Shown here in pieces: positions 26,523 through 61,048 of a stretch of 64,000 nucleotides of DNA (position 1 is its first letter; each line of letters opens with the position of its first letter). Under the pieces are notes generated by a model. It saw only the letters and a program-made list of their open reading frames with translations. It ran no database searches and was not told the DNA's origin. The DNA lies in assembly GCA_047495785.1 (NCBI GenBank), contig JBLDXI010000032.1:248001-312000 (forward strand). Direction: 5' to 3'. The DNA is from Lepidodermella squamata (taxonomy: Eukaryota; Animalia; Gastrotricha). The translations under genes and the position numbers were made by a program.

Positions 26523-28793
26523 TCAATCACTGCAGTTTCTCAGCATTTGCTTGTAAATATTGTCCACTCGCGGCAGGTGAATTTTATGAGACCTAACAAC
26601 CATCGGAGTGATACGCTCCCAGTCCACTTTCATGAGAGCAGCCAGCGCCATGCCGCACGCCAACACGTCGTACAGCACCGTTTGCTCGGGCATGCTCGAC
26701 AACTCTCGCTCGGTCAAAACTCGCGTCGACTCGCGAAAATTCTGAATCGCATACACGCAGTTGAAAATGAACAGCCGAACGTAGTCTTCATCGTCATCGA
26801 CCCCCTTAACAACAGTTCGAGCCGCAATCTTCTCACACTGGTCACCGCCTCCGTTCAACAGGTGGTGAATGATCAAGCACGTATTGGCTAGCTCGTCGTG
26901 ATTTTGCGTGTTGAACCCTTCGAATAACACTCGAGCCGTTAAATCTTCCAATTTTTTAGGATCGGACGCCAGAAATTGGCGAACCTTCGATTTTTCAACT
27001 TGAATCACCGATGCGAGTAGGAAAATCGAATTTCGATACGACGCTTTCACTGAGCAGTAATCTTTCGCGTCGAGAATTCGCCACGAAATTTGAGGCAGTA
27101 GAAAATCGAATTTTGCTAAATTTTCCGCAAAATCTCGAGACATCAACACGTGCCAGCCAATGCATCTCAAAGCGGCACAATGCGACTTTTCACTGGCTGA
27201 TTTTATCGGAAATTTCGCGATTTTCACCAAATTTTCGCTTAAAACCACCGAATTATCAGTCCCGTTCCACTCTCTGATATTTTTATCCGGACGACGATGG
27301 CCCATATAGCTATGAATCATCGGGTCTAGAATTTTAATCAAATGATATAGCCCGTCACTTTTTCGAAATTTCGCATTCCTTTCGGCGAGATCGGTGTAGT
27401 ATTGAAGTTTTTTTGTTAGATAAAACCAGAATTCAGGCCGTTCGTAACTCGCCTGGAAAACAGACTCATAGACCGCCCGCCAGAAATACACGCAATTACC
27501 AGCCGGTTCACGCTCGGTCGGGTCGAAATTCTCGCGAAAATCGAATTGGCTCGCAATCGCGAGGTGAGCGACTGATTTCACCCTCGCGTCGTTCGGCTTG
27601 ATTTTCGTCAACGTATCAATCAGCGAGAACTCGCGGTCCGCAAATTCTGACTCGCGTAGATAGGCCGAAATCAGAACGAGATCGAAGGGGAGCTTAGAAA
27701 TCGGCCCAAAAGGCATGACGCAAAATCCATTGACAATAAACGAAGCCATCCAGTTGAAATCATTACAGGGCTCGAATTTTCGAATGAAATGATTTCGAGT
27801 CAATTCGTGTTGATACAAATTCGCCAGATTTTTCGCGAGGTAGTAATAGATCGACTGGCCTAGACCAGGTCGGGTGACTACAGCCTTCGCGCCTTTACTG
27901 GTCGCTAGATAACAGGCGAGTTTATTGAGAAAATTGCGAAAATTCGAATTTTGAAGGAATGAATTCAGATAAGCAGCTATGCAATTATCGAATAAATAGC
28001 TGTAGCACATCAAAATTTCTCGAATTAAACGAAGATCGGCCAATTCCAGCGAGTCGAAATCGAAAGAAGACATTGAAGCCAATCGCAAAATTTGCGGATT
28101 TTTCGAAATCAAATTCATGAACATTTCGTTGAATCGAAACATTCCATCCTCATCGTAAGAAACCATTCGACGTGAAATGTAGCACAGTTCGTCGATAACT
28201 TCATCGGCTGTTAAATTTCTGGATTCAAGCAAATTTGTCAACACATTTCTCAAGTCGCGGAAAATGCTAGGAATAGCGTTGAATTCGCCGATTGTTCGAT
28301 CGAGTTCATCACCCGGAAATGAGCTGCCCTTATTGCATAAAATCAACGAAGCCAGGTCGACATGGCCCAATTTCGCATAGGAATTCGCGAAAATGTAGTG
28401 GCCTTTTATCCAATCGTCGTTCAAAATCGTGCTGAAATATGCGTTTGAAGCCGCCTCCTTGAATTGGCCCAATTTTTCGTGGCAAAGAGCGATATTCGAG
28501 TATAAACGGTAGTTGTAAGGCCGTAGTTTAGCTGCTTTGCGGTATTTTTCCAGCGCCTCAGCGATTTTTCCTTCTTTGAATAGCGCATTGCCGTCTTCGT
28601 GGGGTTTCGTTACATCGGCCGGTTCGTCGCTGTGGCCAAGGCTTTTTCGAATTTCGGCGTGAATTTGAGCGGCTGATTCTGGGCTGGTGATACGATTCAT
28701 AACTTCAAGGATAGCCTTGCTATCGGCGATTTTTGCGGATTTTCCATCGATTTTTTGCTCGAAAGCCAAGTCGCCAAATAGCAATTCATACAT
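26523..28793 (-). CDS. TPR + helical/ARM-like protein, paralog A (756 aa, intronless)
   Basis: Three TPR motifs (HEDGNALFKEGK..YSNIALC..WIKGH); family motifs PCNDF and ERPEFW; AATAAA on the coding strand at 26424-26429. Confidence 0.88.
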   Translation of the reverse strand: MYELLFGDLAFEQKIDGKSAKIADSKAILEVMNRITSPESAAQIHAEIRKSLGHSDEPADVTKPHEDGNALFKEGKIAEALEKYRKAAKLRPYNYRLYSNIALCHEKLGQFKEAASNAYFSTILNDDWIKGHYIFANSYAKLGHVDLASLILCNKGSSFPGDELDRTIGEFNAIPSIFRDLRNVLTNLLESRNLTADEVIDELCYISRRMVSYDEDGMFRFNEMFMNLISKNPQILRLASMSSFDFDSLELADLRLIREILMCYSYLFDNCIAAYLNSFLQNSNFRNFLNKLACYLATSKGAKAVVTRPGLGQSIYYYLAKNLANLYQHELTRNHFIRKFEPCNDFNWMASFIVNGFCVMPFGPISKLPFDLVLISAYLRESEFADREFSLIDTLTKIKPNDARVKSVAHLAIASQFDFRENFDPTEREPAGNCVYFWRAVYESVFQASYERPEFWFYLTKKLQYYTDLAERNAKFRKSDGLYHLIKILDPMIHSYMGHRRPDKNIREWNGTDNSVVLSENLVKIAKFPIKSASEKSHCAALRCIGWHVLMSRDFAENLAKFDFLLPQISWRILDAKDYCSVKASYRNSIFLLASVIQVEKSKVRQFLASDPKKLEDLTARVLFEGFNTQNHDELANTCLIIHHLLNGGGDQCEKIAARTVVKGVDDDEDYVRLFIFNCVYAIQNFRESTRVLTERELSSMPEQTVLYDVLACGMALAALMKVDWERITPMVVRSHKIHLPRVDNIYKQMLRNCSD

Positions 28794-29559
28794 TTGTAAA
28801 ATAAATCTAAGATGAATTTAAAAAGAATGGAAACATTTCGTAACAGCGTTAAAAAATGAAATTTTTTTTTTTGAAAACAAAACTTTGAATCAAGGATCCA
28901 ATGTTTTCTTTCAACGTGATTTTAAATGAAACTTTGACGAACTGGGTAAAATTGAAATTAAAATTCTGTTAATTAACAAAATAACAAAACTAGTTTTTCC
29001 GGGTCGCTCCAATTCTAATCAAATTGCCAATGCTTTACCATTCCTTCAAAATTTGCATGAAATATGGCATAGGAATTCATCCTTTTAACCGACATCATTC
29101 AAAGTCGCCTCATCTACCGCTTCAGCTGGCTCGACAACAAATGCTCAATCGGCCGAGTTAGGTACAGATAAATAAGAAAATGGATGTGTAAAAGCGATCT
29201 GACCAGTCTTGGCCCTCCTGGGAGGCATCAGCCAACGTATGCGATACATCAACAAACATACTTATGCGTGCTTAAAAGTTTTCCTCGTGTCCAAGCCGCC
29301 AGCGCTTCTCATCGGCCTGTCGCTAACCTCTACTGCCCTGCTACGCATTGCGACTTGTGAACTGTCAACAAATTCTACGACTTTGTGGTATTATCTCACT
29401 ATTCACTATGTAAGAGCCGCGCAAAATCCTCAGCTTCAACACATCCTCGAAATTTTACGCCAGCCCAGTTTGAATGACACGCAGCGTAACGAGGTGTCCC
29501 AAACGATCTACGTTTCACGAAAGTACCAACCATCGTGACATGTCTCGAACGATTCATCA

Positions 29560-29850
29560 GCCATTTTGAACTGCGGCGCGCGGCCCGAAAGTGGATTCCT
29601 TCGCGGTCCGAGACTTTTGCGACAGCTTCGGCTTCCAGAAGCTCCGAACTAGTCGGTACAACAGCCGCGGCAACGCCCTGGTCGCGCGCAGCCGCAGGGT
29701 CCTTGTGGATATCATCGCAACCGGCAACCCGCGCTCGTGGCACATTCAAGTGCTGCGTGCCCTCCGAGCCTGTAAGACGGCAGTTCTGACGTCTCGCCGC
29801 AAAAGCTGGTGTACGCTACCCGGCCTGCACGGCTATCAAGCCCGCAGTTG
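29560..29850 (+). mobile_element. Degenerate LTR-retrotransposon integrase core fragment
   Basis: GPKVDSFAVRDFCDSFGFQKLRTSRYNSRGNALVARSRR resembles the rve segment DNGPQF.S..F..FC...GI....S.Y.P.GNG..ER. Confidence 0.65.
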
Positions 29851-29980
29851 ACCACAAGGCGCGCCCACGGGGACGCCCGTTCAACAGGTTGGCATCAAGC
29901 GAGACCACAACCAAGGTTCAAAATAGGTTTCAAAAATTAACAGAAAACCAAGGGAAAGGCAGCCAGTTTTGAGGTCATCA

Positions 29981-30497: not shown

Positions 30498-30832
30498 GAT
30501 AATTTGCTCAAAGTTTCGAAATTCGGTGAATATTCTGATTTTCAAGTCATAAAAAAAGTAGAAAGTCGTCTTTATTCCGCACAAAGCTTGCTGAATTTTC
30601 CTGATTCATCTCCGAAATAAAGATCATATTAACGAAAGACTGGAAAAAATGGAAATGGATTTCATGCGAAATAGGAATTTCAATTTTTTAATTCAAAATT
30701 CAATTACTGCAATTCACAAACTTGAGAACATTATTCCATTTTGGTTAAACTGATCTCTAAAATCGGAGAGTTGTAGAAAGATCGCTCATAAACTACAATC
30801 GGAACGTCATACAGTCAGTCGCAAACACAAAA

Positions 30833-33800
30833 TCACCGGGCATCTTTGAGAACTTGTTCATAAACATTAGTCAAATGCGCATCCTTCGTAACGCGAATCT
30901 TCTCCTCGACGTCAACAAGCCGCGCGTCCAACTTGACCAAAACAGCCAACAACTGCCCGGCAGCAACAGATAACAGCCGCCCGTAAAACGGGTCACTTTT
31001 CTGCGGTTTTCGTATAAACGCCACCAAATTACGCACTAAATCATCTTCCTCCGCATCGTCCAAATATTGAAACGCCGAATTTCTACACCGGTCATTAGCG
31101 CTGAGAATGTGGTATAACATAAGCACGGCATTAGTTCTAATTTTCACATCCAAATCGCCCTTTGTAACTAAAACAACGCTTTGATGGATGAAATCTCGAA
31201 AACCGCTATATAACAACAGCCGATTACGAAATAACGTATTATTAGGCACGTCAGTCGCTGTGGCCAGGTAGAACAAAGCGCCGGGTAACAAGCTAGTCTG
31301 TCTAGCGTACGAATGAACAACTTCAACCGCCGATGGAATCGCGAAATCGTGCTTAGTGAAGGCGTGGAAAAACTGCGGCGATCTCGCGATGAAATGCGAT
31401 GAAATGTAGTAACATTTCGCCGCGATTTGCTTCATTTCATCTTCGAGGAGGTGATCGAACCGCGACGGCAAATCGTCGCCTAACAACGTTGCAATCGACC
31501 TGGCCAGCATTAGAGCGTTGATTTGTTGATTCCAATTTTTCAACTCGATAACAGAATTTTCGTCCTGATTTTCGGCGATAAAATTTTCTATCAAATCTGA
31601 AATAACGTTCAAATTTGTGACAAAATCTGCGCAACTCGGCTCGTCGTTGAATTTAGACTCTGTAAGGCGGTATAGTCGTTGAATTGCATACGTCCAAACT
31701 CCAGGACGATCCAAGCAAATTGAGGCGGATTTTTTATTTTTCGTAAAAAGCGACCAGGCTGTAATCGAAGATAACGGGTCGTCCATCGTGTGAAATTCGA
31801 ATGAGGAAACTAGGCTTAGAATCGAAAAAGCTTTGGCGAACTGAACCAATCGAGCTGCGTCGTTGAATTGCAGGAAAAAATCGTCCTCTTGAACGAAAAG
31901 CGTCAACAGATAAGCTGGGCAGTCGAAGTTAACATTTTCCTGGCGATTAACCGGCTGGTAGGGGGATGTTATGCAGAATGAGGCTAGTGACAGATTCGCG
32001 TGCCATTCCAGCGTTTTGAAGGGTTCTGTTTTTAGTAGATAAGTCTTGAGGATGGACGAATTGCCAGCGAGTGACACCAGCAGCTTGATGAAATTGCAGA
32101 ATGCAACCTGAAAATTGAACACATCACTAGATCAGAAGTTGAATTTCAAAATAAGTTTAGGCACCGCCCTAGAATTCTACCCAGTTGGGAACGAGAACTA
32201 ACTGCTAAATTTCCTAGCTGACGCGGCAGCAGTTTTCAGGAGGTGGGGTCCTTTCATGTGTCATAATCACTTTTTGAGGCGAATCTAAAACTGTCGGCGT
32301 TTTACGATTATAATTTGTTTGCAATTGCTCGCTCTCGCAGAGCCGATGGAGCAAAAGCAGGACGAGCTGCGGGAAAGGTTGCACGAAACCGAGCTGTCTA
32401 TGATACTGCTGGAATTCCACCCGGTCGAAAAATGGGGCGGTATTTTCGGGCCTCGATCGCTTGACGCTGTCGCGAAGAAACTTGAATGTCTTTTTGCGCT
32501 ATTTCTGCGAAGCTGAAAAAATCTTGCTTTTTCAGCCCGAAGCTAAAAGCCAACTCCTTAAATGTATTGAATATTGGAACGCGTAAATGCATAGACAAAC
32601 ACATATACAAAACGGCCCCTGCTCGCCCCACTGGGAGGAGTCGCCATCGATAGTCAAAGGTTATGGATTACTATTATTATCACCAATTGTATTTTTTCAT
32701 TTTCTAGAGCGAATTGTTAGCCCTGATCAGCCTAATGGAACAAAAGCAAGGCGAGCTCAGGGATAATAAGATGTCAGAAAGCGATCTATCACTGATCGTT
32801 CGAGAATTCTTCCCAGCTGATGCATGGAGCGATGTTTTTAGCCCGCGGTCCCTGGGAGCCGTGGCGAAGGAACTCAATTTATGGAGTCTTCATCTGTTAT
32901 ATTTATGGAAAGGGACAGTGAAAATTGCCAGCTCTTTCTGGTATTAATTTCTTATTCATTAACTGGTCATGTTTTATTCTGGCCCGGATTGGCTCAAGAA
33001 AACAAAGTACTTAGCATGTTTCAATGAAGTTTCTTCGACCTTGAAAAACTTGAGAACCCAAGCATAGGAGGTTTTTCCACTAAAAATGCAATTCGCTTCG
33101 ATCAAACGTTGTTTCCTTGATAATAGGTTTCCTGCTTCTCGAATAATTTAATTCTACTGATCGGACACGTTCCCCACCTCTTAGTTACGATGCATGTACG
33201 AAGTATAAATTTCCTGATGTTTTTTTTTCACGAACCCTTGATATATTTTTTCTAAAGCAGTGAATCGGTGTTATTATAATTATTTCAAATAAAAAATTTA
33301 TACATATTTACAATTATTTATACACTTTATAAAGGTTCAATTTCGATCAAACACATTTTATAAGCCTAGTGCTTGAGTGCTTAAATTTGCTGCTACAACC
33401 TCAATTTTTTGTGCTAATGTATAGAACCTATAAATATTTTCCAACTTACCGGTCCGAAAGGAACAGCTTTCAATGTGCCACTCATGCCGCTGCGGCTCGT
33501 AAAAAACAGCGCCAATTTATTCAAGAAAGTCCGAAAAACCGGTCGTATAACCAACGCCTCAGCAAACCGCCGCGACAACTTCGCATAATCACCCGCGAAA
33601 ATGAGATACAACGCCAAAATATGCAGTTTCTCGATTGACAGTGACGAGATTTCAAACGAATTCCCACGCGTAAAACTGCTCAACGTATCGACTTTTTCCA
33701 GAATTTCCACCGGGCTCTGAATTTCTTCAGAATAATCACCGTCCCCAAAATGGTAAATGCAATGGTTGAGTAGATACAACAGCTTTTCATCGCTCAAATC

Positions 33801-34391
33801 AGGAGATAACATTCGAGCGATTGTCGCATCCAAATCACTGCTATCAGCTACTTTGAACGAACTCCGGCTCAGGGTGGCCTTAGCACCGGCAATATGCTCT
33901 TCCAACAAATCGCAGTCACTTCTCGCAAAATTTTCCTGGATCAAATCGATGTAAGATAGGGCTAGTTGAGCATAGCCCATAAGCGTGTAACTTTCAACAA
34001 GTTTAACCTGCGATTTCAGCCATTTTTTATCGAGAAATCGCGTCACAACCGACGAATAAACAACAGCTTCTTCATAGCGGCCGAGTTTGAAGTTGCACAA
34101 CGCAATGTTCGAGTACAGCTTATAATCACCAGGCGCTTCACCAATAATACTTTTGTAAATCGCTATAGCCTCAGTGTATTTACCCTCGCCGAATAGCATG
34201 TTAGCTTTGGCGTGAAGCGTCGGATTAGCCGGTCGAGCTACGTTGTTATCACCTCGGCATTCGATAGCCATTCTTTCTTGAATTCGTTTCGCCTCAGCCG
34301 GAGTGCTGATTTGTTCGATGATTCTTAAGGTGGACGGACTTTCTGGGCTGTTGAAAAACGCGTCCAAATATTGAGTAGCAAGAGCGGCCAT
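30833..34391 (-). CDS. TPR + helical/ARM-like protein, paralog B (738 aa; exons 34391-33450, 32107-30833)
   Basis: TPRs in ORF 33414-34391; GTAAGT donor at 33449 and TTTTCAG acceptor at 32108, phase 0; RPGVW motif in the second exon. Confidence 0.87.
32319..32947 (+). other. Two diverged ~55-codon coding-like repeats antisense inside the intron of paralog B
   Basis: LLALAEPMEQKQDELR..ELSMI..EFHP...W..IFGPRSLDAVAKKL vs LLALISLMEQKQGELR..DLSLI..EFFP...W..VFSPRSLGAVAKEL. Confidence 0.6.
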
Positions 34392-34469: not shown

Positions 34470-37400
34470 TTATGCACTCAAAGTAGCAATAACGCGTTCC
34501 AGTAGGCTTTTGTCATATTTTGATTCAGTTTTTTCAACAATTTCTTTCGCTGCGATCAGGGTTCCACACGCCAGTTCCTCGCCGATGGAGTGGCAAGCGT
34601 CTGCAAATTCCCCGCCCTTTTCAATTAGAGCGCCGAGCAAAATTAGGCAATTTTCGACATTTTCGGTCTTCTCGCCATCATTTTCCAGCGATTTTTGAAT
34701 TAGACGGCAGAGTATTTCAATGAGTTTTTCGCCACCAGATGTCGCCAGCAAATTTAAGGTGGATTTTTCTTCATTTTCATAACTCAGTAGAACTCGAATA
34801 ATCTTGATAGCATTGTGCTTTTCTTCATTTTTATCAGCGTACAAAAGTTTATTCAGCTCTTTAATCAGCGAATTGAAATGAGGCGATTCCTTGATTTTTT
34901 TCACTCTGGTCATCGAAGGCTTTCGAATCAGCATAGCAATGCAAGAAATTGCGGCTGAGACAGCGTCCGAATCTTCAGCATTCACAATCATGGCTTCAAT
35001 ATCGGTTAAAATCGTCGGTCGTATATTTTCAAGCTCATCAGCAAAATCGGGAGCGACTTTGAAAAATCGTTGTAAAATTTGCAGGAAAAACTTCTGAGCG
35101 ATCTTGATGAAAGATTCGTGTTTACGGCTAGTTTTCTCGGCCAGTGAAAATAAAATGACAAAATTTTCGAGAAAACGACTTTTGACAATAACGTCTTCGG
35201 TGAAAATCGGAGATTCAAGGTGTTGACTCAGGTTTCGCGTGATCAGAAGGGTTTCTTCCAGGTGATCACGATGGTGAACTTTCGTCATGTATCGGGCGAG
35301 ATCAGTGCCGATTGAGTACTGGATTCGGGTCGCCAGATGGAACCAGACGCCAGGTCGGCGAGCGAGGGCTTGAGCAATTTTAGGGCGCTGGGAAATTTTC
35401 AGCCAGAAAGGTAGGAACGATGCGAATGGAATTTTCTCGTAACGGCATTGCTGTGGTCTAAAAATTGTTTAAAAAAATCGAAATTATAATACGATTTTAA
35501 CCCGAATATGCTTTTCGATAACTTTGCAGTATGTCCAAGGAGTATAGAATATATAGATCGAGGCTAATCCCAGCTATATATATTTTGTGCTCGCAAGCAG
35601 CTTGGGAGCATCCATAAATGACGTCCGACGGGGGGAGGGGCTTGCATGACTACTTTGCATGAGTAGTTGCAAAATTTTCAGCGCAAGGCTGTAATATTTT
35701 TTCTATAGTTGCCCAAATGCAGCCGCTCCAGCCGAAACAACTTATTATCATGACATGGTTGCGTATTGCTTATCGATTCCCGGCGTCTTCATTATCACCA
35801 AATCAACGGTGTTGAACTACGTCTCGTTCATAAATTCTGCATTTATGGATGGGTTTCCCGGGAAGAATGAGCGGGTGATTGCTCGAGTCGGCAATGATAT
35901 AGCATGTGAAATAAAACGGGAAGGGGCAAAAATGATGTGCGAACGGGATCGAGCGCGACGCAAATACGACATCGACTCAACAACGACCCGAATTGAGGCG
36001 GATTCCGGCTCGTCAATTGAAATCCCGATTATTCATTTTACGTGATTATTCATTATCTATTCGGTATTCAATGCTGCCACGCACCATGAAATAAAATGAA
36101 ACGCACCATTTCTCAGAAGTTGCAATTCAACTTTTCCATTTCAAAAATTGGGCGTTTTTTCAGGATTCAGAAAGACAGATTTTCGATCCGAGATATGTAA
36201 CTTTAGATTCCCATGTGGATCCAAAATGAAGACGATTTTGGAGATCTCTTCCCATTTTAGGTGTTGTAGCGGATGGAATCGGAAAATCTGTTATTCAATT
36301 TTATTGAAATTATAGCTTCACACATACTTGGTTTCGATAGCTTTACTTGTTGCATTATTGGATTATCATAGGTTATTATATGTGAAGGTCGAACGCCATG
36401 CGTTCAAGTAGCGTGCCTGCCTAGCACGCCGCCTTCCTAACTTATAAACCTCTCAATCTTCTACCCCTCTAACACAATTCAAGATTGCGAAATAACGTTG
36501 TATATTTCAACTATAGATTGCTAACTGATTACTTCTGTTTACCCGATGGTAAGCAAAGATTCCGTGGGCGGATATATTATGATACTATACCAGCGTAACT
36601 CATTCAACTGTCGATTACCAAATCAAATGACAGTTGATTCCAAAAAGTCTTTGTTTTTTACAGAACAAGAGGCTTCGACCATTGATGCATAGATTTCAGA
36701 TAACCAGGAACGCCGACACGGTATCTGAGGCCGGCCAATCAACCAATCACGCCACGTCCTCCACCCCGCCTTATCGAACTCACCCAAGGCTATCACGCTG
36801 TTGACATGACGGTAGCTCTTATATGGAACGTCGTACAACACAACCTCTCCGTTGAGACCAAAGAGCAAACGGACATTCTGCTGAACTTGACTAACCTTCG
36901 CAAAAACCGCTCGTCGGAGCCCGGCAGTTAACTGAGCGAATCGGCGCTACGAGCGGCGCTTTCTTTGCGTGCTAACGAATACGACGCCCACGGCGGCAGG
37001 ACAACCACGACAACAACAGGACGCCGTTATGGCTGTCAATTATTATTGGTATTGCCGGTTTATATTTTTATTGGCAACTTTTGCTCACTTGTTTTAAAGA
37101 TGCCGGAAATGATCTGAAGTGATTGAATGTGGTTTTGAAGGCGAATAAGTAAAATGAAGCAGGATTTACTTTTATTAGTCATTACTTCAGCGAGAACACA
37201 GTTCGGGATAATACGTCTTGAAATGTAAGATTTGTTTAAAAAGCTGACAACATTCAAGGCTCCCGGTCATGATGAAATACCGAACATTGTGATTTAAAAT
37301 GGTGGTCCAAGCCTAGCCTCTCACCTAGATGCTTGCAAGAATTAATTAGCAACAATTTCTAGCCAACTTTGGAATTTTGCCAATTTATGGCGTGAAAACC

Positions 37401-48563: not shown

Positions 48564-51500
48564 TCATGCGGTATTAGAAACATTGCTAATACACTCGCAG
48601 AGTTTCCGATCCATCTCAGATTCGCACAATTTCTTCACATCATTCGCGATTTCGACGAGGCTGGATGACAAATCGTGACTTAAGCGGCGACTTGCCTCCG
48701 AAAATTCATCGCGAGCCGAAATCAGGTGAGCAATCAGCAGGATTGCCGACTTTTTCTCGTTGATAAGCGGGTCACTTCGGATGAAACGGACGAGGCCTTC
48801 CACCAGAACTTTAGCCTTCAAAACAGACAGGCTATCGAGGAGTCGGCCCAGTTCGTCGCCAGTTTCAGATTTTGAGGCGATTCGAATAAGGTTGAGCAGA
48901 ACTTCAATAGCAACACCCTCGATTTTTTCAGCATTTTTCCCTGAGTTGTCGCCAGTCAAAAACGAGCCAAGGCGTTTAGCAAATGACGGAAATTTATCAG
49001 ATTTCATTGCTAAAATTATTTTCTTCGAATCGCATTGAGCAGTCAAATTTGCGAAACAACAAGTCGCTAGACTAGCAATATCGCTACGATCAATACCACC
49101 GGCGATAGCGACCAAATTTTGCAGCACTTTTTTGTCTTTTTCGAGCAAAATATCCGAAAATTTCGAACTGAGCTTAGAAAGACCTTTCAGAGCAGTTAAA
49201 GCGCCGATGAGAACTGGGTCAGGGAAAAATTCTGACCCGCCGCGGAATTTACCAAGAAGTGGGATCAAACCGGATCTGAAGCGCTTCAGCGTTTTGTCGT
49301 ATTCTTCGAAGATCGGCTGCTCAATAGGACCGTTGAACAGATTTTTCAGGACAACCAGAGTTTCTTCAAGGTGTTTACGGTGCAGGCCACGGTTGTCGCA
49401 GTGGGCGAAATTGACTGCCGCAAATTTGAGTCGGGTTGCGAAGTGCAGCCAAATGCCAGGTCGGCGGATCATGATTAGGCGCAATTTCTCGATGCCTAAT
49501 AAAATAAAAATAAAACATTTGAAAAAGTTGAGAATATCAATTTGGATGTCTTCAAATGATAAGATACAATCAAATCGTAATGTAGATTAGTCTAAAAATT
49601 ACTTTTATGTGGCCATTATCCACGCTAACAAACAAAACCTCCCTTTGCCCTCAATTCAGCCAAAAATTCATCAGTTTTCATCATTCTACATGCTAGCCGA
49701 CTTGATTTTTACGTACTCGACGGCAATAGTGCGTTTTGTAATACCCCGAACAACAAATTTCCGAATTTTTTTGTCAACTGATTTTCAAAAATGAAAAATA
49801 AGAAAATGTCCCTTCAACTCGAAAAGTTCTCCCACTGCTGACCATGAGGCTGGCGGGAATGGTGGTGCCGGCATAAATGACGGAGGCGGGCAGGTGCGGG
49901 CAGCTTATGGGCTCAGCAAGCGAAGAATTCAAGGTGATACTGAATGCTGAATGACTAACCTGGCCTTAAACTGCGCCGACGATGACAATGCCCCTGTCAG
50001 TCGGTTTCCGGCGAAGTTGGTCGCTGTTTCGGTTTTTTCATTTTCAACGGAAATGTCTGTGTCGCACTTCGCGAGTATGAATGCGAGCCGTTCAAGCAAA
50101 ACCAAACGCAAAAAGTTTCTTTTGGAAAAATGTCATCATACTGTATTGTATTATGTATTGTTTAGTCTCAATGGTTGTGCTGGTTATGCTAGCCGCCATC
50201 TCCTTAGCGTCTGGATACACTCAGCGCTTAAAATCGCACGAAAAGCCTACACGGGGAATATACTGCACGCTACACCATATGATCGTTTCGTAAAAAGAAA
50301 TGATAACAATCGTGATTTTTTGGGGTGTCCCTCAAAATAAAAAAATTCAAAAAGAACCCGCCCTATCGAATCTGACGAAGAAGATTCCTCTAGAGCAGAG
50401 TATGACGACGACGCCCAGTGGTGGCGCGGTGTCAATGGCGAAATTCGATTCGCGATCGCCAGAACTTTGGGTAACCACTTCCAATTTCTCATTGAGAAGG
50501 AATTCAGCGCGCCCATGTCATTATGTGACCACTTTTTAAGCGGGAAACAACGCCTTCTCCTATTGGTTAATTCAAATACTACGCGATACCATCGAGGACA
50601 CAGCGCCTGGCTTTCTTCACTGTATCTGCCTTGGTGACGTGGGACTGTTTCAAGATATAATCCGCGACGAAGACAGTGTTTTCTATCTCGGAGGTGAACT
50701 CACCATAAAAAGACTGGGATTACCTTTAATTTAGGTTTGGCCCGTTAAAATGCGGCGACGATGACAATGCCAACGTTGTTCAGTTGGTTTCCGGCGCAGT
50801 TCGTCGCTGTTTCGGTTTCTTCATTTTCAACGGAAATGTCTGTGTCGCACTTCGCGAGTATGAATGCGAGCCGTTGAAGCAAAACCAGTCAGAAGTCAGA
50901 GAATTTAAAATTTAAAGCGATTGAGAGATTCTAAAGCCAAGCGATTTTTCGTTCCGAAGGCGATTTTTGCGTGTTGTTTGCGTTTTTACTAACTGTATTC
51001 CTTTTCATGTTACGCACATCCGCTATTCGCTCGGGCTACGGATACCATAGCCCGGGTTCGAAATGCTGATGTCGGCCTTGGTGCTACTGCAGCTCTGCAT
51101 CATCTTGGTAATTACAATGGTGAAATTCGATTCGCGGTCGCCAGAACTTTGGGTAACCACTTCCAATTTCTTATTGAGAAAGAATTCAGCGCGGCCACGT
51201 GCCACGTGTTATTAAGTTGTAATTTCAATGTCCGGCAAGCCGGATTCGCTTAGTCAAATTTTAGCTATCTCGAATTTCAAGCGTATGCCAGAATTCACCG
51301 CCGGCGATTCTCCTGACGCGCACATCGACGCCTTCAAAGACATTTTAGAGGACTTGAGAGGCAGCGACTTCCCATGCGAGTTGGCTAGCCCAGGCTATGA
51401 GCTTAATTGCCGATGAAGCGATGACGCGTCTGACTTTGGTTCTGATGAAGAAGCCGAGCAAGCGGCAGTCACTGGTTCAAGCGCAGGAACTGACGAGATG

Positions 51501-54500
51501 AAGCTCAAAATGATGAAAGTCGGCACTCAGGTAGTGTAATACCACTCGTTGAAGCGGGCAATCTTGGAACTCACCACTAACGCCGTCGACATAACAGATG
51601 GCCACGAGTTTCCCTTCGCTACGTCGCATTTCGCTGCGATGCTCAAAGCCGCTAAGCAAGATATTTACTTAATCTACGTAACCTATCTCATTGGTCAACG
51701 TTTCTACGTTTAACTAACGTTTCGCATTACGTCCTATGCCCAACAGGGGCAAGGTTCCGAAACGCCTGGAGCAAGGCGCATACAAAGACGGTAGAGTTCC
51801 ATGCAGGAAGTGCGCGGATGCTGGAACGATTAGATTCAATTGTTATTTTCAACGGCGTCAGTCGGTGACTTGCTACAATTGCAATCAATCGGGCCATTAC
51901 TCCGAATGCCCGACGCGTCAACCAAGCGTGTCAGGAAAGGCGGGTAACCCAAACCCCTCGAAAAAGGGTAAGAGACAACAGGCGGCTCCGAGCCGCGGTG
52001 GCAAACAGCAGGGGCATGTTCGCCTTCTGGAGGGAACTGCCAATGCTGACCCTGCTGAGAGGCCCTCGACCTCAGGTACTACGCCGAGTCAAGGTGCTCA
52101 TGGTCAAAGCGTTGTTCAACCTGCTCAAGTACGGTATTTCCTGTTCCCTGAAGCCGACAATTCTCATTCTCATTACAGCAAAGACCTATACTCTAAAATA
52201 ATCTGAAATTGGAAGCTATATAAGGAGACCTAAAATTTCTTCTCATTTAGATGAATACCGGCTTCAAAAATCTCATTTTCTTCATACAAGAGGCTAATTG
52301 CCATAATTTGTATTCCTGTTTTAACAATGAAAAACCCATAAGAAAACGCCGTAGACTTAAGGTTTTCGAAGATTAGTTTTGAAATAGCAAGCAAGTCCGC
52401 CATACGTTTTCAAAATTTTTAGCTAGAAAAATTCTTGGAGCTGAGCTTAGACGGACCACTGACCATTCTCTGAGGACAATAACAACCAGCAAAGCTCGCG
52501 CGCCAGCTCGAAGTTGTTGAAAAAATGCACATTTCTTGCCACTTAATTGTAACATGACTTGATAATCAATCAAAAAAATTTTACACTGTGAATCAACAAT
52601 TAATTTGTAATTTCTCAGCAAGTTATTGTCAATTTTTTCAAATTGAATTAGGGCAGTAAAACGGTATCTCTCTCGCATTTTCGTGGAGTGATATCACACA
52701 CAATATCAAAATTTACCTGATATTTTCACCCAAAATGGCAGAAACGAAGCGTATGGTGGCTGGATGCAGACATTCATGTCACCGCGACTGAACATCAGCA
52801 GCGTACTCGTCGTAGCCAACATCGAAATCGGATGCTCCAACTCTTCGTCCGGGGTCGCTTTCAACTTATCGATAAACCACGACTCGCAAAATAAGTTCGC
52901 CAGAGATTCAGCAATCATGTAATTATCAGGCGAATCTCGAGTGCTGTAAATCGCTCCTTGCATCGCCAGCAGATGCGTGTAGAACGAAAAGTCATTGAAA
53001 GGCGCCTTGGTCTTGAAAACCGAATTCCTCACAACTGAACTTTGACTCGCCTTGCCGATACAGTAAGTAAAAGGCCCGAAAAACCCGCCGCCAGGAATTC
53101 GCCAGCCAAAACGCAGGTAATTATTCTGAATATTCGCTCGTTTCGTCGCGGCGTAACCAATGCGGGAGAAGAAATCGGCGAAACCAGGCAGTTGGATGAA
53201 AAGAACTTCGGCGACTTCAACCTGGTTGTGAATCAGCATCTGGAGATGAGTCATCATGAGGCCGATGAACAAGCACTGACCAGCGTCTTGTTCCAGAATG
53301 AATTTTTCGGGATTTTCGAAAAACTCACGAGTATGCGGGGTTCGCTTGAATGAGTTAATCGCAACTGACATAGTTTCATCGTAATCGTAATTGAGTGACA
53401 TATGTTCGTTTAGGAATCGGTAAACCTCGGCAGATCGTTCGTCGGACGAGAAGAAACGACGTTCGCATTCTTTGTAGTCTTTCTTGTCGAGTTTCTTGAT
53501 TTTATCCTTCGGAACCGCCTTAATCAAAGCTTCGGCCTCTTTGCGGAACTCGGCTCGCTCAGCTGGGTGAATGGCGTCAATTCGCATTTGAACATGCTTA
53601 CGAGCCGCCTCAATATAGCCCATGTTGCATAGATTTCGGACGACCAGGAGGTTTCCTTTCAGAGAGCCTGGTTGGTTATCACCCGCCACGTTCAGGTACG
53701 ACAGGGCCTCCTCGTTAAGACCCATTGCCGTGTAGCAAATAGCGGTGTTTGTGTAGTTTCGAAGGTCCATAGCGGATTCGGCCATGGCTTTCTTGTAGAA
53801 TTCAATAGCCTCGGCGTGCTTGCCTTCGTTGTAGAGATCGTTGCCTTTATTGCGCAACTCTTCCGATTTTTTAGCCCGCTCTGATGGAGATCCACCGCCA
53901 GTCAAATCCAAAGCTAAAACGAAAAATAAACAATCAAGAGAAATATTTTACAGTAGTCGAAGAAATACGCTATTTTACACTCAATTTCATACTCATGAGA
54001 AAAGTTCCAGTAAAGTTAGCCGCAGATATCCTCCCTCTTTGCAAGTTGCTAAATTGGAACGACAGATTTTTCCTGAATATGGCTTTTTGTCACGGCTATA
54101 GCGATCCTGATTACAACGTAATTCGAAATCGACAAGTCTCGCGTTTCTCTCCGACCATAAAAACGGTACTTGTGGAACTATTTTCAACACAATCTATAAC
54201 CGAGATTCCTTTTTACATGTCATTTATCAAACGAAATTTCATCTCTATTCAAATTGACTGAAGATCAACATAGAGCTTTTGCGCTTATTGCCAAGGCCAA
54301 ACTGTTGGCCATAAAATCGATTTAGTGTTCATTTTGCGTCGCGTGTCTATCATCGCTATGACTCGTGCCAAGGTCATTGGCACTCTTCGCCGTGTGCCTA
54401 AACCATTAACACTATCTAATGCAAAAGTTGTTCGTGTATCGGCTTCATCTCCTGCGGGGGAGCTCGAGCATGCTACTCAAGTTGCGAATTTCGCCGCCTT

Positions 54501-56758
54501 GATAACCTGGCAAAAATCGAAATTGAGTTGGCCTCGAAATCTAATAGCATTGGCTTGCCACCAGCTACCGGTGCCTTCATTCGTTTAACCAGCCTTTCAA
54601 ACGATCGTATTTGACCAGTCTCGATCTCGGCCGTATTTGATCACCCATCCACCTCAACTGCGTTCGATCACCCGAGCGCCTCGTCAAACTTAAGCATAGT
54701 CGATTGACACTATCTACCGTCCAATTTTTCGAAAGCTATGAGCAAATTTACGATACAAATCAGTTCGAATGCGACACGCTCGAACTACTCGAGCTCGATT
54801 CTCAAGCGATTCCCCGACTGACAACGATATGCTCACTGTGAGATTTGCGAGTCTGCTTGCCGGTATTCACAGTTTCTGTCGCGAAGTTCTCGAGCGAATA
54901 AGGGTTGACAAGAACATCTGGTGTGAATGTCACTTTCAATATGATCCTGATATAAGAACTCAACTTGAACTGAGAAAGCCTTTTCACAACCCTGCCGCTG
55001 CTGCATCCCGATACGTAGAAGCAAGTTGTAGCAAAATGAACGGCTCAAACGATCAACGTGATGCTTATCTGATGGGCGTAAAATCGATTATTCCATTTTA
55101 CGGAGTACCCTCGTTATTCTTCACCTCTTCAACAAATCAAGCCGAAGAAGTTTCAACTTCGCAAATGATCTGGGCTTCTCTTAGCGAATTGAAAATGAAA
55201 GTCCAACAGACGGGATGACTACATTTATGATCTGGAATTGAGGAACCTTCTTTCTACTTTTTTTATTTTACTTTCACTCTGTATTTTAATATTCGGTTTC
55301 GTGCCTTCAGCTTGGAAATTAGCTGTTATAACCTCACTCCCTAAACCAGGAAAATATCATCAAGGTCACAGGCCTATGTCTCTTCTTCCAAGCTCTTCGA
55401 CAAAACGATGAATCGGCTAATAATGACAACACAAGAACGGAAATAAAGGTTTACCAACTGGCAATGTGGTTTCCATTATCTAAATATAGGTCAGCCAAAA
55501 CCAAGAAATTCTTTATCAGCCAATTGGGGGCAGTTGGCTACTGTCTAGTAGGTCATGCGTCTGTGAGAATTCTCCGTATTTAAAAGATACCTTCGATTGA
55601 ATATAAAACTTGCTGAGATGCATTGCTAGTGGTCGACGTTTTCCTTCGAAATATACATCAGTACGGAAATGAGCAAACGACGCCTCCTAATTCAGCGACT
55701 AACCAAACGATCTCTTTGCATGCCAGCAAACTCATCCGACATCACTCCACCTGAGCAGTGGCTGTGTTACTGGCCATTCTTTACAAATTCAAAAAATTGC
55801 TGTTATTAAAAATCCTTACAAAAATGACCGCACACATTAGCTACGGAATTAAGGCAGATTTTTTAACTAGTAACTTTTAACTAGTTTATTTAATTCAAAT
55901 TAAATTTTCAATTTTTCAATTTTAGTCACACCTTCCCGCGGAATTAAGGGCTTCGGCATTTGAAACCACGTCGGTATAAGAAATCAGAATTTTAGATAAA
56001 AATTCGTCTATACAGCGTCATCACCTGTATTACAACACGTAGCGCGTGTCGAAGCCGAGGCCGAGGCAAAGCGAAAAGCCACTTGGGACGTAGGCGCCAG
56101 TGATATCAGTTACCAACCCGGTGACAAGGCTCAGCGTCGAATAATTCCTGGCCTATCTGGAAAGTTCGAAGACCGCTTCGACGGCCCCTATTCTATCGTT
56201 CGATGCTATTCTATCGGTCAAAATCTGTACTGGATCAGGAGAGAAGGGACTGAAGGCGAATTCGTCGAGAACGCGTGCAAGTTCAAAACATGGAAGAAAG
56301 CAATTTTTCTATGGCCCCAAAATGAACGCTCCAGAAATCGACAAATGAGCCAACGCAACTCCCCGACCTCGAGGAAGTGCCTTCTCAGAAAGGCAGCCAG
56401 GGTTCAATCCCCGGGTACGACATTTTTCAAGTACTCGAGTAGCGCGTTACAAAACTAATGAAGTTCTCTTGGCTCAGGAGAATAGCCAGACAGGCTCAAA
56501 ATTCTGATATATTTTAAAATCTCATATTTAAAGAGTACAACCTTAGTGATCAAGAGAGGAATCGCAAAACATCGGAAAAATTATAAGAAATGGCAACTCA
56601 CATGTATGGGTGTTGAAATCATTGACTTCATTCGCACAGTCGACTTTGGAAATCAGCTTCAAATTATCAGCGGTATCAACCGGCGGACGGACGATTTTCT
56701 CCTTCACAATAGCCTCATAGTCAAAAACTGGTCCGTACAACGTAGCCAAATAATCCAT
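48564..56758 (-). CDS. TPR + helical/ARM-like protein, paralog E (761 aa; exons 56758-56602, 53913-52717, 49495-48564)
   Basis: MDYLATLYGPVFDYEA exon 1; GTGAGT and GTAAAT donors with TTTTAG and ATTAG acceptors, all phase 1; total 2286 nt in frame; same family motifs. Confidence 0.86.
49960..51195. repeat. Local imperfect duplication of two segments in intron 2 of paralog E (~49965-50105 = ~50746-50887; ~50434-50510 = ~51115-51192)
   Basis: TCATTTTCAACGGAAATGTCTGTGTCGCACTTCGCGAGTATGAATGCGAGCCGTT and GAAATTCGATTCGCG.TCGCCAGAACTTTGGGTAACCACTTCCAATTTCT each occur twice. Confidence 0.85.
51228..52140 (+). mobile_element. Degenerate LTR-retrotransposon gag remnant with zinc knuckle
   Basis: MPEFTAGDSPDAHIDAF gag-like start; VTCYNCNQSGHYSECP CCHC-like knuckle; interrupted by stop codons. 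Confidence 0.65.
54325..55218 (+). mobile_element. Helitron/Helentron Rep N-terminal fragment
   Basis: KMNGSNDQRDAYLMGVKSIIPFYGVPSLFFTSS matches the GS......L.AM...G.P..F.T.S motif of Helitron Rep; truncated. Confidence 0.65.
56040..56290 (+). mobile_element. LTR-retrotransposon integrase C-terminal (GPY/F) fragment
   Basis: KRKATWD....SYQPGD followed by GKFEDRFDGPYSIV...NLYWI. Confidence 0.65.
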
Positions 56759-56837
56759 TCCGAATAAAAAATCTCTAAAATCTATCGTGAAAAAATAGAA
56801 TTGATAAATAGAGCCGAAAAATATTGTCTGCAAAAAT

Positions 56838-58608
56838 TTAAACAGCTCCAGCTGACGATTCAAATAAACGAGATTTCAACTCAGTCGCAAGTTTAACAAT
56901 ATTGTCAAAATAAATTTTCACTTCCGTATTGGCACATTTGAAATTGAGCAGAACAGTCAGGGATTCTTCCAAGCTATCACGGGCATCAGGCGCATCGTCA
57001 ATAGCAATAATTTCCGGCTGAGAAATATTTTTCAAAACCAACAGGGTGTCTTCAAGGTGGCTGCGGTGATGCGAAACCGTGTTGTATAGCGATATATGCT
57101 TAGCCGAATAACCAAGGCGAGAAATGAGGTGAAGCCAAACGCCGGGACGACCAGCCATCTCGACGCGAATTTTCGCGTTTTCAGATAATTTCATCCAAAC
57201 CCGGTGGAAAGACGCAAAAGGCGCTTTTTGAAGTCGATTCACCTCAATTCGGCTCTGCAGAAGAAGCGAACTAACGCAGGATAGCATAGATAAAGCGTGA
57301 TTAATATTGCCTCGGCCCGAATTTTCGAATTTTTCAATAAACCAAGGTTCACACATCAATTGCGTAAAAGCCTGAGTAAATTCTTCACAAGGCGACGATT
57401 CTTTCGTGTCATAAATCGCGAAATACATCGCCATCAAATGAGCATAGAATGAAAATTCATTGAAAGGCGCAGTAGACTTGATGAAACCACCTCGAACCTT
57501 TTCGTTTTTGATTAAGGTGGACAGCATGCTGACAAAAGGGCCGAAAAAACCGCCGACGACATACGAAGCGCCCAACCGCGTGAAATGGTCTTGAATATTC
57601 GTTTTATCCGTCACGGCATAGGCTAAATTTACCATCATTTTTCGAATAAATTCCGGCTCTACGAAGGTCTCAGCAATTGATTTGTTAAACTCGATCGGCA
57701 TTTGAAATTGCTGGAAATAGGTAGTGACAAGGAGTACTTCCGCCCCAGACATTTTTTTGAAATGGCCCTTCGGATCGGTCAAAAACTGCTTCAAATACGG
57801 CGTATTACCCATGCATTTACAAATCACCTCCAAATAATGCGAAAACCCGTGATTTTTCAAGCGATATAGGGTAATACCGAAAAAGACATGCAGTAGGAAG
57901 AAATAAACCTCGGCGGACCTTTCGCCTTCTTTCAACAAACGCTGCTCGATTTCAGTTAGAAACGCCTCATCAAATTTTCTCCGGTTATATTCTGGTACCG
58001 CTTTAATCATTTTCTCGATTTCCTTTCGATAAATATCGCGTTCTTGCATTGAAGCGGCTTCGTTATCTAATTCACGAGGAACGATGCCAGCGAGTCCAAG
58101 GTTACATTTGGCCTGGGCTAGGAGCAGGGGTAGCTTGGGCGATTGAAGATCGACTTCCAGGGCTTGTTGGCAGATGGCGAATGCTTCTTCGTCCAGGCCG
58201 AGATGAATGTAGCAAATGGCCATGTTGTTGTAGATTCGAACGTCGTAAGGATCTGATGCGAGAGCTTTCTTGTAAATTTCGATGGCTTCGACGTGTTTTT
58301 CCGCCTTGAATAGTTCGTTGCCTTCTTCTCTCAGTTTCGCGCCATCAATTTGCCTCTCGTACTTGGACCTTCCTCCAGCCAAATCGAGACCTTGAAAATT
58401 AAACCCGTTTAAATTACAAAAACTAAAGAAATATTTACAAACCTATCCGAATGTTCAAATCGCTGACTGCCGAGGAAGACGTAATCGTTGATATGAAGTT
58501 CAAGTGTTCAGGCCCATCCACGGGTACAGTTGAATTTTCACCATTTGCAGTAGTCTCGTAAACAAAACATTCGCCAAAGAGCGTATTGAAAACATTCATT
58601 TCAGCCAT
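56838..58608 (-). CDS. TPR + helical/ARM-like protein, paralog F (572 aa, C-terminally short; exons 58608-58443, 58390-56838)
   Basis: MAEMNVFNTLFGECFVYE exon 1 (166 nt, phase 1); REEGNELFK TPRs; PFNEFSFY.HLMA, CEPWF, RPGVW, HLEDTL. Confidence 0.86.
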
Positions 58609-58799
58609 TTCTCTTTAAAAAGTAACCTGAGTAAACATGTTTGATAATTAGACATGTTGATTGAATTTCAATATTAGGAATATTATTTTTCAAATTATTA
58701 CGAGTTGGATAACAACTTCACGAATTATCGATATCTGTATCGCAAATCGTATATTCAAAAATGAAACGCAAATTAAAATCCTTAACAACCATTATTCCA

Positions 58800-61048
58800 T
58801 CAAAAATTGGCACAAAAATTGAGCAAATTTGTCTTGGCAGCGTTTTCAGAATCAGCTCGGATTTCCTTGGCCAAGTTGAGGAAAGAGCCATGATTGGCGA
58901 TCGATCGACATTTATCGATTATGCTGGCATCAATATTCGAGGCTTCGGCCAACATTTCCAATGCTGAGGTGAGAATATCACTTTTGATTGCCGATTGTGT
59001 GAACAAATGAGCGACCAGATTCACGAAAATCACAGAATTCGATTGGATTCGATTTTTCGCCTCATCGTCGGATACCTCCAAAGCCGACGAAATAAGCTTC
59101 TTGAAGACGATTATTACTGATTCGATATCAAGGCTCGAATTAATCTCCGTAGAACGCGCTGATAAGTTTTCAATGAAATCTTTAGATTTTGCCAACTTCA
59201 GAAATTTCACAATTTTTTTCGAAGACGCGCACTTAGCCAAAACCACAAAACAAGGAAACGCGACATTTTCAAACTCCTTGTTCAAACACAAAGTAGAAAT
59301 TCTCGATAATATCGGCTCATCAACAGCCAAAAAGATTTTCGGGAAAATCGAATTCATCTCACTCAGATTTTTGGCAATCACCAATGCATTTTTAGTATTC
59401 GGCTTCAACCTCAGATCTTTGTTACACAAAACAGCCGCCAAACCCTTTCGCAATCGCTCCAATGACGTCGTATTCGCCACAATTTCGTTAAGATCGACCT
59501 TTTCCATCGTCAAATTCGTGAGTAGAGTCAAAGTTTCCTTCAAATGTTCCTTACTGAATGGCGAATATTCTGAGAAATTAGTCGTGGCGTAGGCCAATCT
59601 AGTGGCAACATGATGCCAAACACCAGGACGAGCCGCTAAAAGCAGTCTCAAACTCGGCCGTTCGGACATTGCGATCCAGAAAGGTAGGTAAGAAGAAAAA
59701 GGTGGCTGTTGCGATCTCAACATTTCGTGTCTCGAATTCATAAAAATCGTGCTGATTGTAGCCAAAAGTGACAGGGCATGGTCCAATTTATCACGCGGCA
59801 TCGATTCCAATTTTTCAAGAAACCACGGCTCGCATAGTAAACTCGTAATATTTCGGTTGAATTTTTCGGTATCAGGCGAATTTCTAGTATCATACGCCGC
59901 GATGTAATTCGCCATTAAATGGACGTAGAATGACAAATCGTTGAAAGGTGGGGTGTTTTTCAAGAACCCATTCCTGACTTCATTCGCAGTTAGAAGGGAA
60001 GACAAAATCGGGACAAAACTTCCGACAAAAACAGAACCACTAAGGCTGAATCCAATTTTTGGATAGCATTTCTCGTAGGTTTCAAATTTAGTCGAGCAAT
60101 ACGCTATTTTGAACAGAGCTTTACCGAGCGGCGCTTCTTCGGCCAGAAATTGCTTAGTCCCATCATCACGAGTGAAAAACGAGTCGACTAGCGTGAAATA
60201 CGTGGAGATGAACCGAGCCGCGCCTGGGGTCATTTCAGCGCCTCGAGTCTCGGGGTCTCGCAGAAAATCGCTGATATACGGCGCTCTATGCATCATTTTC
60301 ACGAGGCATACGCACCAACGATCAAAGGCGTTGAATTTTTCGTCCATTGCCATGGTTAGATAGGAAGACATCAGGGCCAGGTAAACTTCGGCCGACCTTT
60401 CGCCGGGAGATAGGAGACGCTTTTCAATTTCGTCCAACTCAGCAGTACTACCTTCTTTTTTCTTGTCATTCGGAACTGATTTGATGAATTTTTCAGCCTC
60501 TTGGCGATAGAAAGACCTCTCACCCTTTGGAATATCTTCCAAGCTGTTTTTTAACTGGAAAACGGCTTCATCGACTCGACCTAGTTCACAATGAGCTCGG
60601 ATGATGAGAAGGTTCATCTTGACAGAGCCGGTCATGTCGATATCTGAACCGCAGCTTAGATAGCAGAGCGCTTCCTCGAATAGACCCTGGTTGATGTAGG
60701 CGATGCCGATGTTTGTGTAATTTTTCAGTTCGACAGGGTTCAGAACAATAGCTTTTTGATAGCATTCGATCGCTTCTTTGTAGTTTTTATTGCGGAAGTG
60801 TTCGTTGCCGGATTCGCGCAGAGATTCGCTTTCAGCAATTCGACTTGCTTTGGTTTGACCTCCGTAAATTTCATCGCCTAAAAATAAACATAATTTTATA
60901 GAGAAATATGGAATAAATTTAAAATATGAAGGACAAAAACTGAATTTCTGCTGCCTATAAATCGGTTCCACCGTAAATACTCGGGTTGAGAACTCGACCC
61001 GCTGAAGCGAGCGATCATCGCCTCGCTAGAGGGTGAACGAGTTTTCAT
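58800..61048 (-). CDS. TPR + helical/ARM-like protein, paralog G (main exon 60877-58800; tentative exon 1 61048-60955 via GC-AG intron)
   Basis: TTTTTAG acceptor at 60878 at the family intron position; RESGNEHFR TPRs; PFNDLSFY.HLMA, CEPWF, PFW, RPGVW, HLKETL. The 5' end is uncertain. Confidence 0.82.

Follow-up and report, generated by a model that had tools for sequence, protein, structure and literature searches.

What kind of proteins are encoded by a run of seven related genes, A–G, in the genome of the gastrotrich Lepidodermella squamata, and do they belong to any class described so far? The genes lie in a 64,000-nucleotide (nt) stretch of the contig JBLDXI010000032.1 (positions 248,001 to 312,000), which we analysed as a whole and call the window; all coordinates below refer to it. 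Sequence comparisons and structure models together indicate that they form an undescribed family, in which a head of three tetratricopeptide repeats (TPRs), of the type found in CHIP, Hop and RPAP3, precedes an armadillo (ARM) body, and that this family is an orphan at the sequence level. A preliminary description of the locus had seen in it a lineage-specific expanding family of TPR-helical proteins, possibly diversified co-chaperones or intracellular sensors under diversifying selection. Our analysis confirms what was observed there and supports the interpretation in part.

Seven diverged paralogues on one strand

The window has the features of eukaryotic DNA, with a guanine-cytosine (GC) content of approximately 43% and sparse open reading frames (ORFs). 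Gene models were built by hand from reading frames and splice sites. A tblastn search with the three longest ORFs recognized seven paralogous genes, all on the minus strand between 26.5 and 61 kb, and no further family members elsewhere in the window. All introns in the models of A–G are canonical (GT..AG) with T-rich acceptors, and every junction is phase-consistent. The modelled coding sequences of A–F contain a terminal stop and no internal one.

Among genes C–G, tblastn E-values range from 1e-45 to 1e-95, while A or B matches the other members at about 1e-16 (A matches B and D at about 1e-16 to 1e-17). Pairwise protein identity across A–G is 16–35%. Judging by these comparisons, the similarity among the seven is far beyond chance. 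The motifs PFNDFxFYxHL, CExWF, SLLAxxST, PFxSFLPFW, RPGVWxH and HLEETL are clear in the alignment of C–G and degenerate in A and B. A short N-terminal segment of the LFG..F(D/V)YE type is present in A, C, D, E and F; in C–F, the LFG..F(D/V)(Y/F)E peptide is encoded by a separate first exon with a phase-1 donor. In general, the cluster looks much as it was first described: seven same-strand paralogues, about 570–780 amino acids (aa) long (572–780 aa in our models of A–F), each with three TPRs, sharing these motifs and this N-terminal segment in the members named, with reading frames that stay open despite great divergence.

Conservation varies along the protein. It peaks in TPR1-2 and in a central motif block (residues 339–378 of full-length D), with a second block at residues 446–484. 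The last third is barely alignable across the family and highly variable, and it is missing in F.

The TPR head

Pfam recognized TPR families at the N-terminus of all seven proteins and nothing else (E ≤ 0.1). Gene D was used for structure modelling. It encodes 780 aa in two exons on the minus strand: exon 1 (48277..48442) carries the LFGNPFDYE segment and ends with a phase-1 donor (A|GTGAGT) in front of a 58-nt intron, and exon 2 (46042..48218), whose product was modelled, carries three TPRs and the full ARM body. In the model, the TPR domain of D (47821..48192, minus strand) consists of six helices and a capping helix (model helices 9–132).

Compared with PDB sequences, residues 4–112 of D match STIP1/Hop (E = 3e-17), RPAP3 (1.5e-12) and CHIP (1.4e-11); SGTA is matched in sequence as well, and the matches to clamp domains span 1e-8 to 3e-17. 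The modelled head superimposes on the TPR2 domain of RPAP3 bound to an HSP90 peptide with a Z-score of 15.0 and a root-mean-square deviation of 2.5 Å over 120 residues (24% identity). Both lines of comparison argue for a head of three TPRs and a capping helix that is of the peptide-clamp type known from CHIP, Hop/STIP1, RPAP3 and SGTA.

Established work on Hop and CHIP assigns to the carboxylate clamp a Lys/Arg-x-x-x-Asn in TPR1, an Asn in TPR2, and a Lys and an Arg in TPR3. By this assignment, 7/7 proteins retain three of the positions: Asn in GN, Asn in TNxAxC and Lys in TPR3. The latter two align with YTNRALC and VKAHFF of CHIP. The family resembles CHIP, Hop, RPAP3 and SGTA in the sequence and structure of the head and in the Asn, Asn and Lys positions of an incomplete clamp; beyond the head, the protein is unrelated to theirs and has no U-box, DP or RPAP3_C domain.

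The armadillo body

Over the 450–600 residues that follow the TPRs, Pfam is blank and reports neither an Arm repeat nor an UNC45 family. We obtained two AlphaFold2 models, one of the product of D exon 2 with an alignment of ten paralogue pieces (predicted local distance difference test, pLDDT, 80.2; predicted template modelling score, pTM, 0.78), and the other of the post-TPR part alone with 15 rows (pLDDT 81.7, pTM 0.83). Both are all-helical, with about 35 solenoid helices past the TPR head and its cap.

In an exhaustive structure search with the ARM domain alone, beta-catenin was matched at Z 17.8 (444 of 577 residues aligned), axonemal ARM proteins at 16–17, APC at 16.9, SmgGDS at 16.5 and importin-alpha at 16.4. 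A closer look at the Foldseek matches gave Z 18–19 for the ARM domain of APC and 15–17 for beta-catenin (residues 140–724), and Atlas models of catenins reach template modelling (TM) scores of 0.5–0.55 to the body. AlphaFold and Foldseek had been put forward in the preliminary description as a check on the post-TPR region; at a pLDDT of 80–82 they show an armadillo solenoid, with approximately 11–12 repeats and a strongly conserved central block. In D, the most conserved part (46945..47319, minus strand; alignment A3) holds PFNDF..FY.HL, CE.WF, SLLA..ST, PF.SF.PFW and RPGVW.H, and the mean column identity of this central block among C–G is 57%.

The predicted fold, a right-handed superhelix of three-helix repeats, is thus shared with beta-catenin, APC-ARM, importin-alpha, SmgGDS and Vac8 over nearly the whole post-TPR region (Z 15–19, 300–450 residues). 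The identity to these canonical ARM proteins is 8–14%, however, Pfam recognizes no Arm repeat in the family, and the family has a TPR head in addition. The aromatic motifs PFxSFLPFW and RPGVWxH are specific to the family and lie outside the Arm consensus.

Are these genes merely multiplied and extremely diverged copies of UNC-45/UCS or TTC12? The order of domains is the same: in UNC-45, as in the family, a TPR domain of three repeats at the N-terminus leads into a solenoid built wholly of armadillo repeats. The TPR domain of UNC-45 binds Hsp70/Hsp90 tails. In the whole-protein Foldseek search, C. elegans UNC-45 (6qdl) was the top match (E = 4.8e-6), yet its TM scores were 0.27/0.23, and we attribute its rank to the shared TPR-then-ARM order rather than to a specific relationship. 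No homology to the central or UCS region was detected by Pfam (E ≤ 0.1), by the PDB profile or by the HMMER profile, and a HMMER search of 1.84 billion representatives found no match outside the family. With the ARM domain alone, She4 scored Z 14.2 and Drosophila UNC-45 13.2 (rank 43), below beta-catenin, APC, SmgGDS and importin-alpha, so that, in structure, beta-catenin and APC are closer to the body than UNC-45 and She4 are. This bears out the remark in the preliminary description that no UCS motifs could be recognized.

TTC12 likewise has a TPR head followed by armadillo repeats, and it is a conserved single-copy gene. It acts as a cytoplasmic dynein-arm assembly factor (PMC8836003). Among the 1.84 billion representatives, the post-TPR profile of our family picked up neither TTC12 nor any other HMMER-detectable relative outside the family. 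UNC-45 is also larger, with 869–904 modelled residues in the C. elegans chains (PDB 6qdl and 4i2z) versus 570–780 aa here, and PMC9331494 gives one UCS gene each in worms, flies and fungi, versus seven in this cluster. As sequence homology is undetectable and the ARM domain is closer to generic ARM proteins, we rejected membership in the UNC-45 family; a strongly diverged UNC-45/UCS or TTC12 origin is very unlikely, and no full-length orthology to a characterized family was found.

Relatives and age of the family

Word-indexed searches of 5.8 billion proteins with the whole of D and with its post-TPR region returned nothing but a TPR kinase, and when PDB sequences were searched with a profile of the post-TPR region, the only matches were designed helical proteins (E > 0.2). 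The ESM Atlas feature search yielded no score ≥ 0.9. In a scan of JGI metagenomes with the two best motifs, 164 stretches matched and none was confirmed. An Rfam scan of the window was empty, and in the literature searched we found no description of such a TPR-armadillo family.

A HMMER profile of the post-TPR alignment gave six matches among the 1.84 billion representatives. Five of the six are ORF fragments of three genes on metagenome contigs from ENA. We discarded the sixth, P0007 (E = 3.4e-4), because this 725-aa repeat protein matches by chance, through the resemblance of its REGVWV repeats to RPGVW. There was no post-TPR match outside the family at E ≤ 0.001, and homology more remote than this lies beyond the reach of HMMER.

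The first of the environmental genes (L001/L002) is B-like and complete, a prokaryotic gene caller having broken it up at two short introns; a 574-aa ORF upstream of it was tested with the hidden Markov model and is not a family member. The second (L004/L005) encodes a member with the N-terminal peptide VFGEAF. A second TPR start lies 1.8 kb downstream, and there are therefore tandem copies there too. On L004 (1-8784) the TPR-ARM gene adjoins approximately nine aldo-keto-reductase ORFs, a neighbourhood that differs from that in our window. The third match is a fragment on a lake-metagenome contig (L003, 1-882) that is 41% identical to gene G in a stretch with 41–47% GC. The first 400 nt of this contig have 70–79% GC and contain a bacterial-type methyltransferase ORF; most likely, the contig is a chimeric assembly.

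In a maximum-likelihood tree, B pairs with the environmental gene L001 (support 100/99), and these two fall into one clade with A and the other environmental gene, while C–G make up the second (100/99). Terminal branches measure approximately 0.8–1.9 changes per site. With branch lengths near one change per site, the duplications must be old, and from the pairing of B with L001 it follows that at least the lineage of B is older than the split from another animal. By this phylogeny, gene B has an orthologue-like partner in another animal. We are thus dealing with an old orphan family arrayed in tandem. The proposal of a lineage-specific expanding family therefore needs to be divided: the family is lineage-restricted, expanded and built as TPR-then-ARM, but its duplicates are old, which speaks against an expansion that is going on at present.

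It is worth stressing a caveat about the term lineage-specific. An ORF resembling gulonolactone/arabinonolactone oxidases (17692-18660, minus strand) has best public matches of 39–43% identity in Naegleria, early-diverging fungi, mites and mammals, with none above 44% among the matches listed. As this ORF has no close match, the databases evidently hold no close relative's proteome. Judged by the searches above, the family is nevertheless undetectable in all well-sampled animals.

Expression and selection in genes E and F

A search of sequencing runs found two that contained the region, X1 (labelled only "RNA?") and X2. X2 covers the whole of the 6-kb stretch examined, as DNA would. X1 covers exons and drops to zero depth at 54491-56480, inside intron 1 of E.

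Gene E (761 aa, three exons, minus strand) consists of exon 1 with the LYGPVFDYE segment (56602..56758), exon 2 with three TPRs and the first half of the ARM body (52717..53913), and exon 3 (48564..49495), for which the acceptor TTAG|GCATCG was predicted. A joint in X1 connects 53913 with 56602, skipping 2688 nt with CT..AC ends, and corresponds to the predicted intron 1. In another X1 contig, the match breaks off at 52716 and the sequence beyond is the reverse complement of the beginning of exon 3, as predicted for intron 2. Gene F (572 aa, two exons, minus strand) consists of exon 1 with the LFGECFVYE segment (58443..58608) and exon 2 with three TPRs and an ARM body that ends soon past HLEDTL (56838..58390), the latter covered by X1 contigs. 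The joint at 58390/58443 skips 52 nt, which is the predicted F intron. Because its three joints are exactly the three introns predicted in E and F, we read X1 as transcript-derived. Thus, E and F are expressed and spliced as modelled. The preliminary description had held that silence of most copies would speak against its interpretation; both genes examined proved to be expressed and spliced.

Selection was approached through polymorphism instead of the ratio of non-synonymous to synonymous substitutions (dN/dS) between paralogues, whose synonymous sites are saturated at 16–35% protein identity. We used the differences of X1 and X2 from the window, with 40 of 74 listed and two samples mixed, so the figures are rough. 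Among the differences listed, 36 are in the coding sequences of E and F; 31/36 fall on third codon positions, and 30 are synonymous and 6 non-synonymous. Assuming approximately 3.5 non-synonymous sites per synonymous site, the corresponding per-site ratio (pN/pS) for E and F together is about 0.06 for the differences listed. The figure is rough and the direction is clear: E and F are under purifying selection.

In the 3′ part of F (56856-57143), a transcript-like contig shows 13 differences from the window in 288 bases, 10 of them synonymous, and at 57222-57369 a second contig pair shows both forms. These differences point to high allelic or strain diversity.

The same data bear on two other explanations of the cluster. 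One is that the proteins make up a repertoire of intracellular sensors or decoys, diversified by selection to meet varied foreign ligands as in immune receptor families. A large tandem family with 16–35% identity and a hypervariable C-terminal third would fit such a role, as would the TIR-NB-ARC-ankyrin gene located 15 kb away. The low pN/pS in E and F speaks against it, as do the ancient duplications and the orthologue-like partner of B; moreover, Pfam finds no signalling or effector domain, and the operon-like spacing of the cluster is typical of constitutively expressed genes. We consider this repertoire quite unlikely, and the diversifying selection suggested in the preliminary description finds no support in the 30 synonymous versus 6 non-synonymous differences listed in E and F or in the partner of B.

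The other is that the array consists of non-functional duplicates in decay. F without its C-terminal third, G without a recognizable first exon and the transposon debris in the long introns might be taken as signs of it. All seven frames are open over 572–780 codons, however, and E and F are expressed and correctly spliced, with differences strongly biased to synonymous sites. Decay is largely refuted for E and F, and for the array as a whole we regard it as extremely improbable.

Spacing of the genes

The genes follow one another head-to-tail on the same strand. From each stop to the next ATG the gaps are 191 nt (G to F), 79 (F to E), 121 (E to D), 131 (D to C), 78 (C to B) and 2039 (B to A), which means that five of the six measure only 78–191 nt. 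A T-rich stretch ending in AG, a predicted unpaired 3′ splice acceptor, lies 4–30 nt ahead of each ATG. Such a layout is that of operons resolved by a spliced leader. The tight spacing suggests operon-style co-transcription resolved by spliced-leader trans-splicing.

Models of the remaining genes

Gene A (26523..28793, minus strand) was modelled from its ORF and the Pfam TPR matches as a single exon of 756 aa with an N-terminal LFG..AFE segment, three TPRs and a diverged ARM body. Gene B (738 aa, minus strand) has two exons. Exon 1 (33450..34391; Pfam TPR) encodes the N-terminus, three TPRs and the start of the ARM body and ends with the phase-0 donor CCG|GTAAGT; exon 2 (30833..32107) begins after the phase-0 acceptor TTTTCAG|GTT and encodes the C-terminal ARM part.

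In gene C, also on the minus strand, exon 2 (38141..39293; Pfam TPR) encodes three TPRs and the first ARM half, with a phase-1 acceptor (CTTAG|GT) and the donor GA|GTAAGT, and exon 3 (34470..35457) follows a phase-2 acceptor (TTTTTAG|ACC) and encodes PFxSFLPFW, RPGVWxH, HLEETL and the C-terminal ARM repeats. A candidate exon 1 (45745..45910, minus strand), carrying an LFG..LDFE segment, is homologous to the first exons of D, E and F. It lies 6.4 kb upstream of exon 2, and its phase-1 donor (G|GTATGC) matches the acceptor of exon 2 in phase. If it is used, gene C has three exons and 768 aa. Inside this putative 6.4-kb intron, the plus strand carries ORFs with a PAN domain (42889-43455) and a CTHRC1 C-terminal domain (44504-44920). 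Either these are genes nested in intron 1 of C, or the first exon of C is an orphaned remnant.

Relaxed tblastn for the missing C-terminus of F found no further F-like exon ahead of the first exon of E. For gene G, exon 2 (58800..60877, minus strand) encodes three TPRs and the full ARM body in a frame of 691 aa after a phase-1 acceptor (TTTTTAG|GC), as in C–F; counted from this exon, the protein has at least 691 aa. A relaxed tblastn search ahead of G recognized no LFG/FDYE exon, and a good phase-1 donor is missing for the ATG at 61048. The end of the cluster, which the preliminary description had set at 61048, is thus not confirmed. Upstream of G, two stretches (61230-61320 and 62310-62400) look similar by eye. 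They could represent a repeat or an insertion by which the first exon of G was displaced or lost.

Neighbouring genes and repeats

Other genes in the window are of animal type: an M13 peptidase, a TIR + NB-ARC/NACHT + ankyrin gene, a GT10 fucosyltransferase, the gulonolactone-oxidase-like ORF, and the PAN and CTHRC1-type ORFs. An NLR-like gene occupies 7574-11577 on the plus strand, 15 kb away from the cluster; in it, a TIR ORF precedes ORFs for NACHT/NB-ARC and ankyrin repeats.

The long introns of C and E contain repeat families D2-D5 and transposon fragments. Both C introns hold the same repeat element (36859-37782 and 40062-41700; 84–94% identity, families D4 and D5). In the long introns of E (49997-51200, 51736-52206 and 54769-55218) we observed two tandem repeat pairs with a spacing of approximately 700–780 nt and 93–95% identity, together with a zinc-knuckle (gag-like) ORF and a weak Helitron-like ORF. 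This content of the E introns is transposon debris.

Possible role of the family

What might such proteins do? The explanation that we favour, at slightly less than an even chance, is by analogy with known co-chaperones: an adaptor family in which the TPR head would sit on C-terminal tails of the Hsp70/Hsp90 type, while the armadillo bodies would hold different partners. The protein looks cytosolic, with an LFG..FDYE peptide, a three-repeat TPR head, an ARM solenoid and a variable C-terminal third. Its head would dock an acidic C-terminal tail, most likely the EEVD end of Hsp70/Hsp90; the conserved central ARM block would do a job common to the family, and the divergent ARM surfaces would bind different partners or clients. 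The N-terminal LFG..FDYE peptide may be a docking or an auto-inhibitory element. The logic would be that of UNC-45 and TTC12, but in a protein unrelated to them in sequence and multiplied many-fold. A co-chaperone role, as raised in the preliminary description, fits a head that resembles CHIP, Hop and RPAP3 in sequence and in the model.

Several points weigh against the adaptor explanation. The first basic clamp position is Arg in C–G and His in A and B, rather than Lys as in CHIP, Hop, RPAP3 and SGTA. The fifth clamp residue of Hop, the Arg four residues past the TPR3 Lys, is not conserved; the aligned CHIP sequence also lacks this TPR3 Arg. Both structure models rest on shallow alignments (10 and 15 rows), and the ARM fold is generic and uninformative on the ligand. 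The expression check covered E and F only. In the run contigs over the 6-kb stretch, no spliced leader or polycistronic RNA was seen; the sole hint of a leader is a fold-back of an X1 contig at 58613, beside the predicted acceptor of F.

Some of these points would also suit generic TPR-ARM scaffolds, with a head that binds a non-chaperone ligand (another acidic or C-terminal peptide, or the protein's own LFG..FDYE) and a structural or trafficking role. The incomplete clamp, in which A and B have His at the first position and the Hop-type Arg is missing, is compatible with such scaffolds, and so is a conserved N-terminal peptide without an assigned role; axonemal, trafficking and adhesion ARM proteins also match the body at the same Z as chaperone-related ones. 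On the other hand, the best natural matches of the TPR head (STIP1, RPAP3, CHIP and SGTA) are all binders of Hsp70/Hsp90 tails, and very old paralogues have kept three clamp positions without change. We regard a scaffold of this kind as the second most likely explanation, at odds clearly below even.

The adaptor explanation can be taken a step further. In this lineage, an otherwise unknown TPR-armadillo family may have given rise to a large set of client-specific Hsp70/Hsp90 adaptors, expressed from trans-spliced operons; in this full form, the proposal is unlikely, but its consequences deserve attention. As a rule, there are few TPR-clamp co-chaperones, each encoded by a single-copy gene, as with Hop, CHIP, UNC-45, TTC12 and RPAP3. 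If true, the repertoire would be a diversified co-chaperone system without a counterpart in model animals. A many-membered, old and conserved family with the same head and an unrelated ARM body would mean either a new partitioning of chaperone clients or a new class of TPR-ARM scaffolds. Even if its function is mundane, the cluster illustrates clearly how an old tandem family can be maintained with operon-like spacing, and it shows that poorly sampled small invertebrates hold much protein-family diversity.

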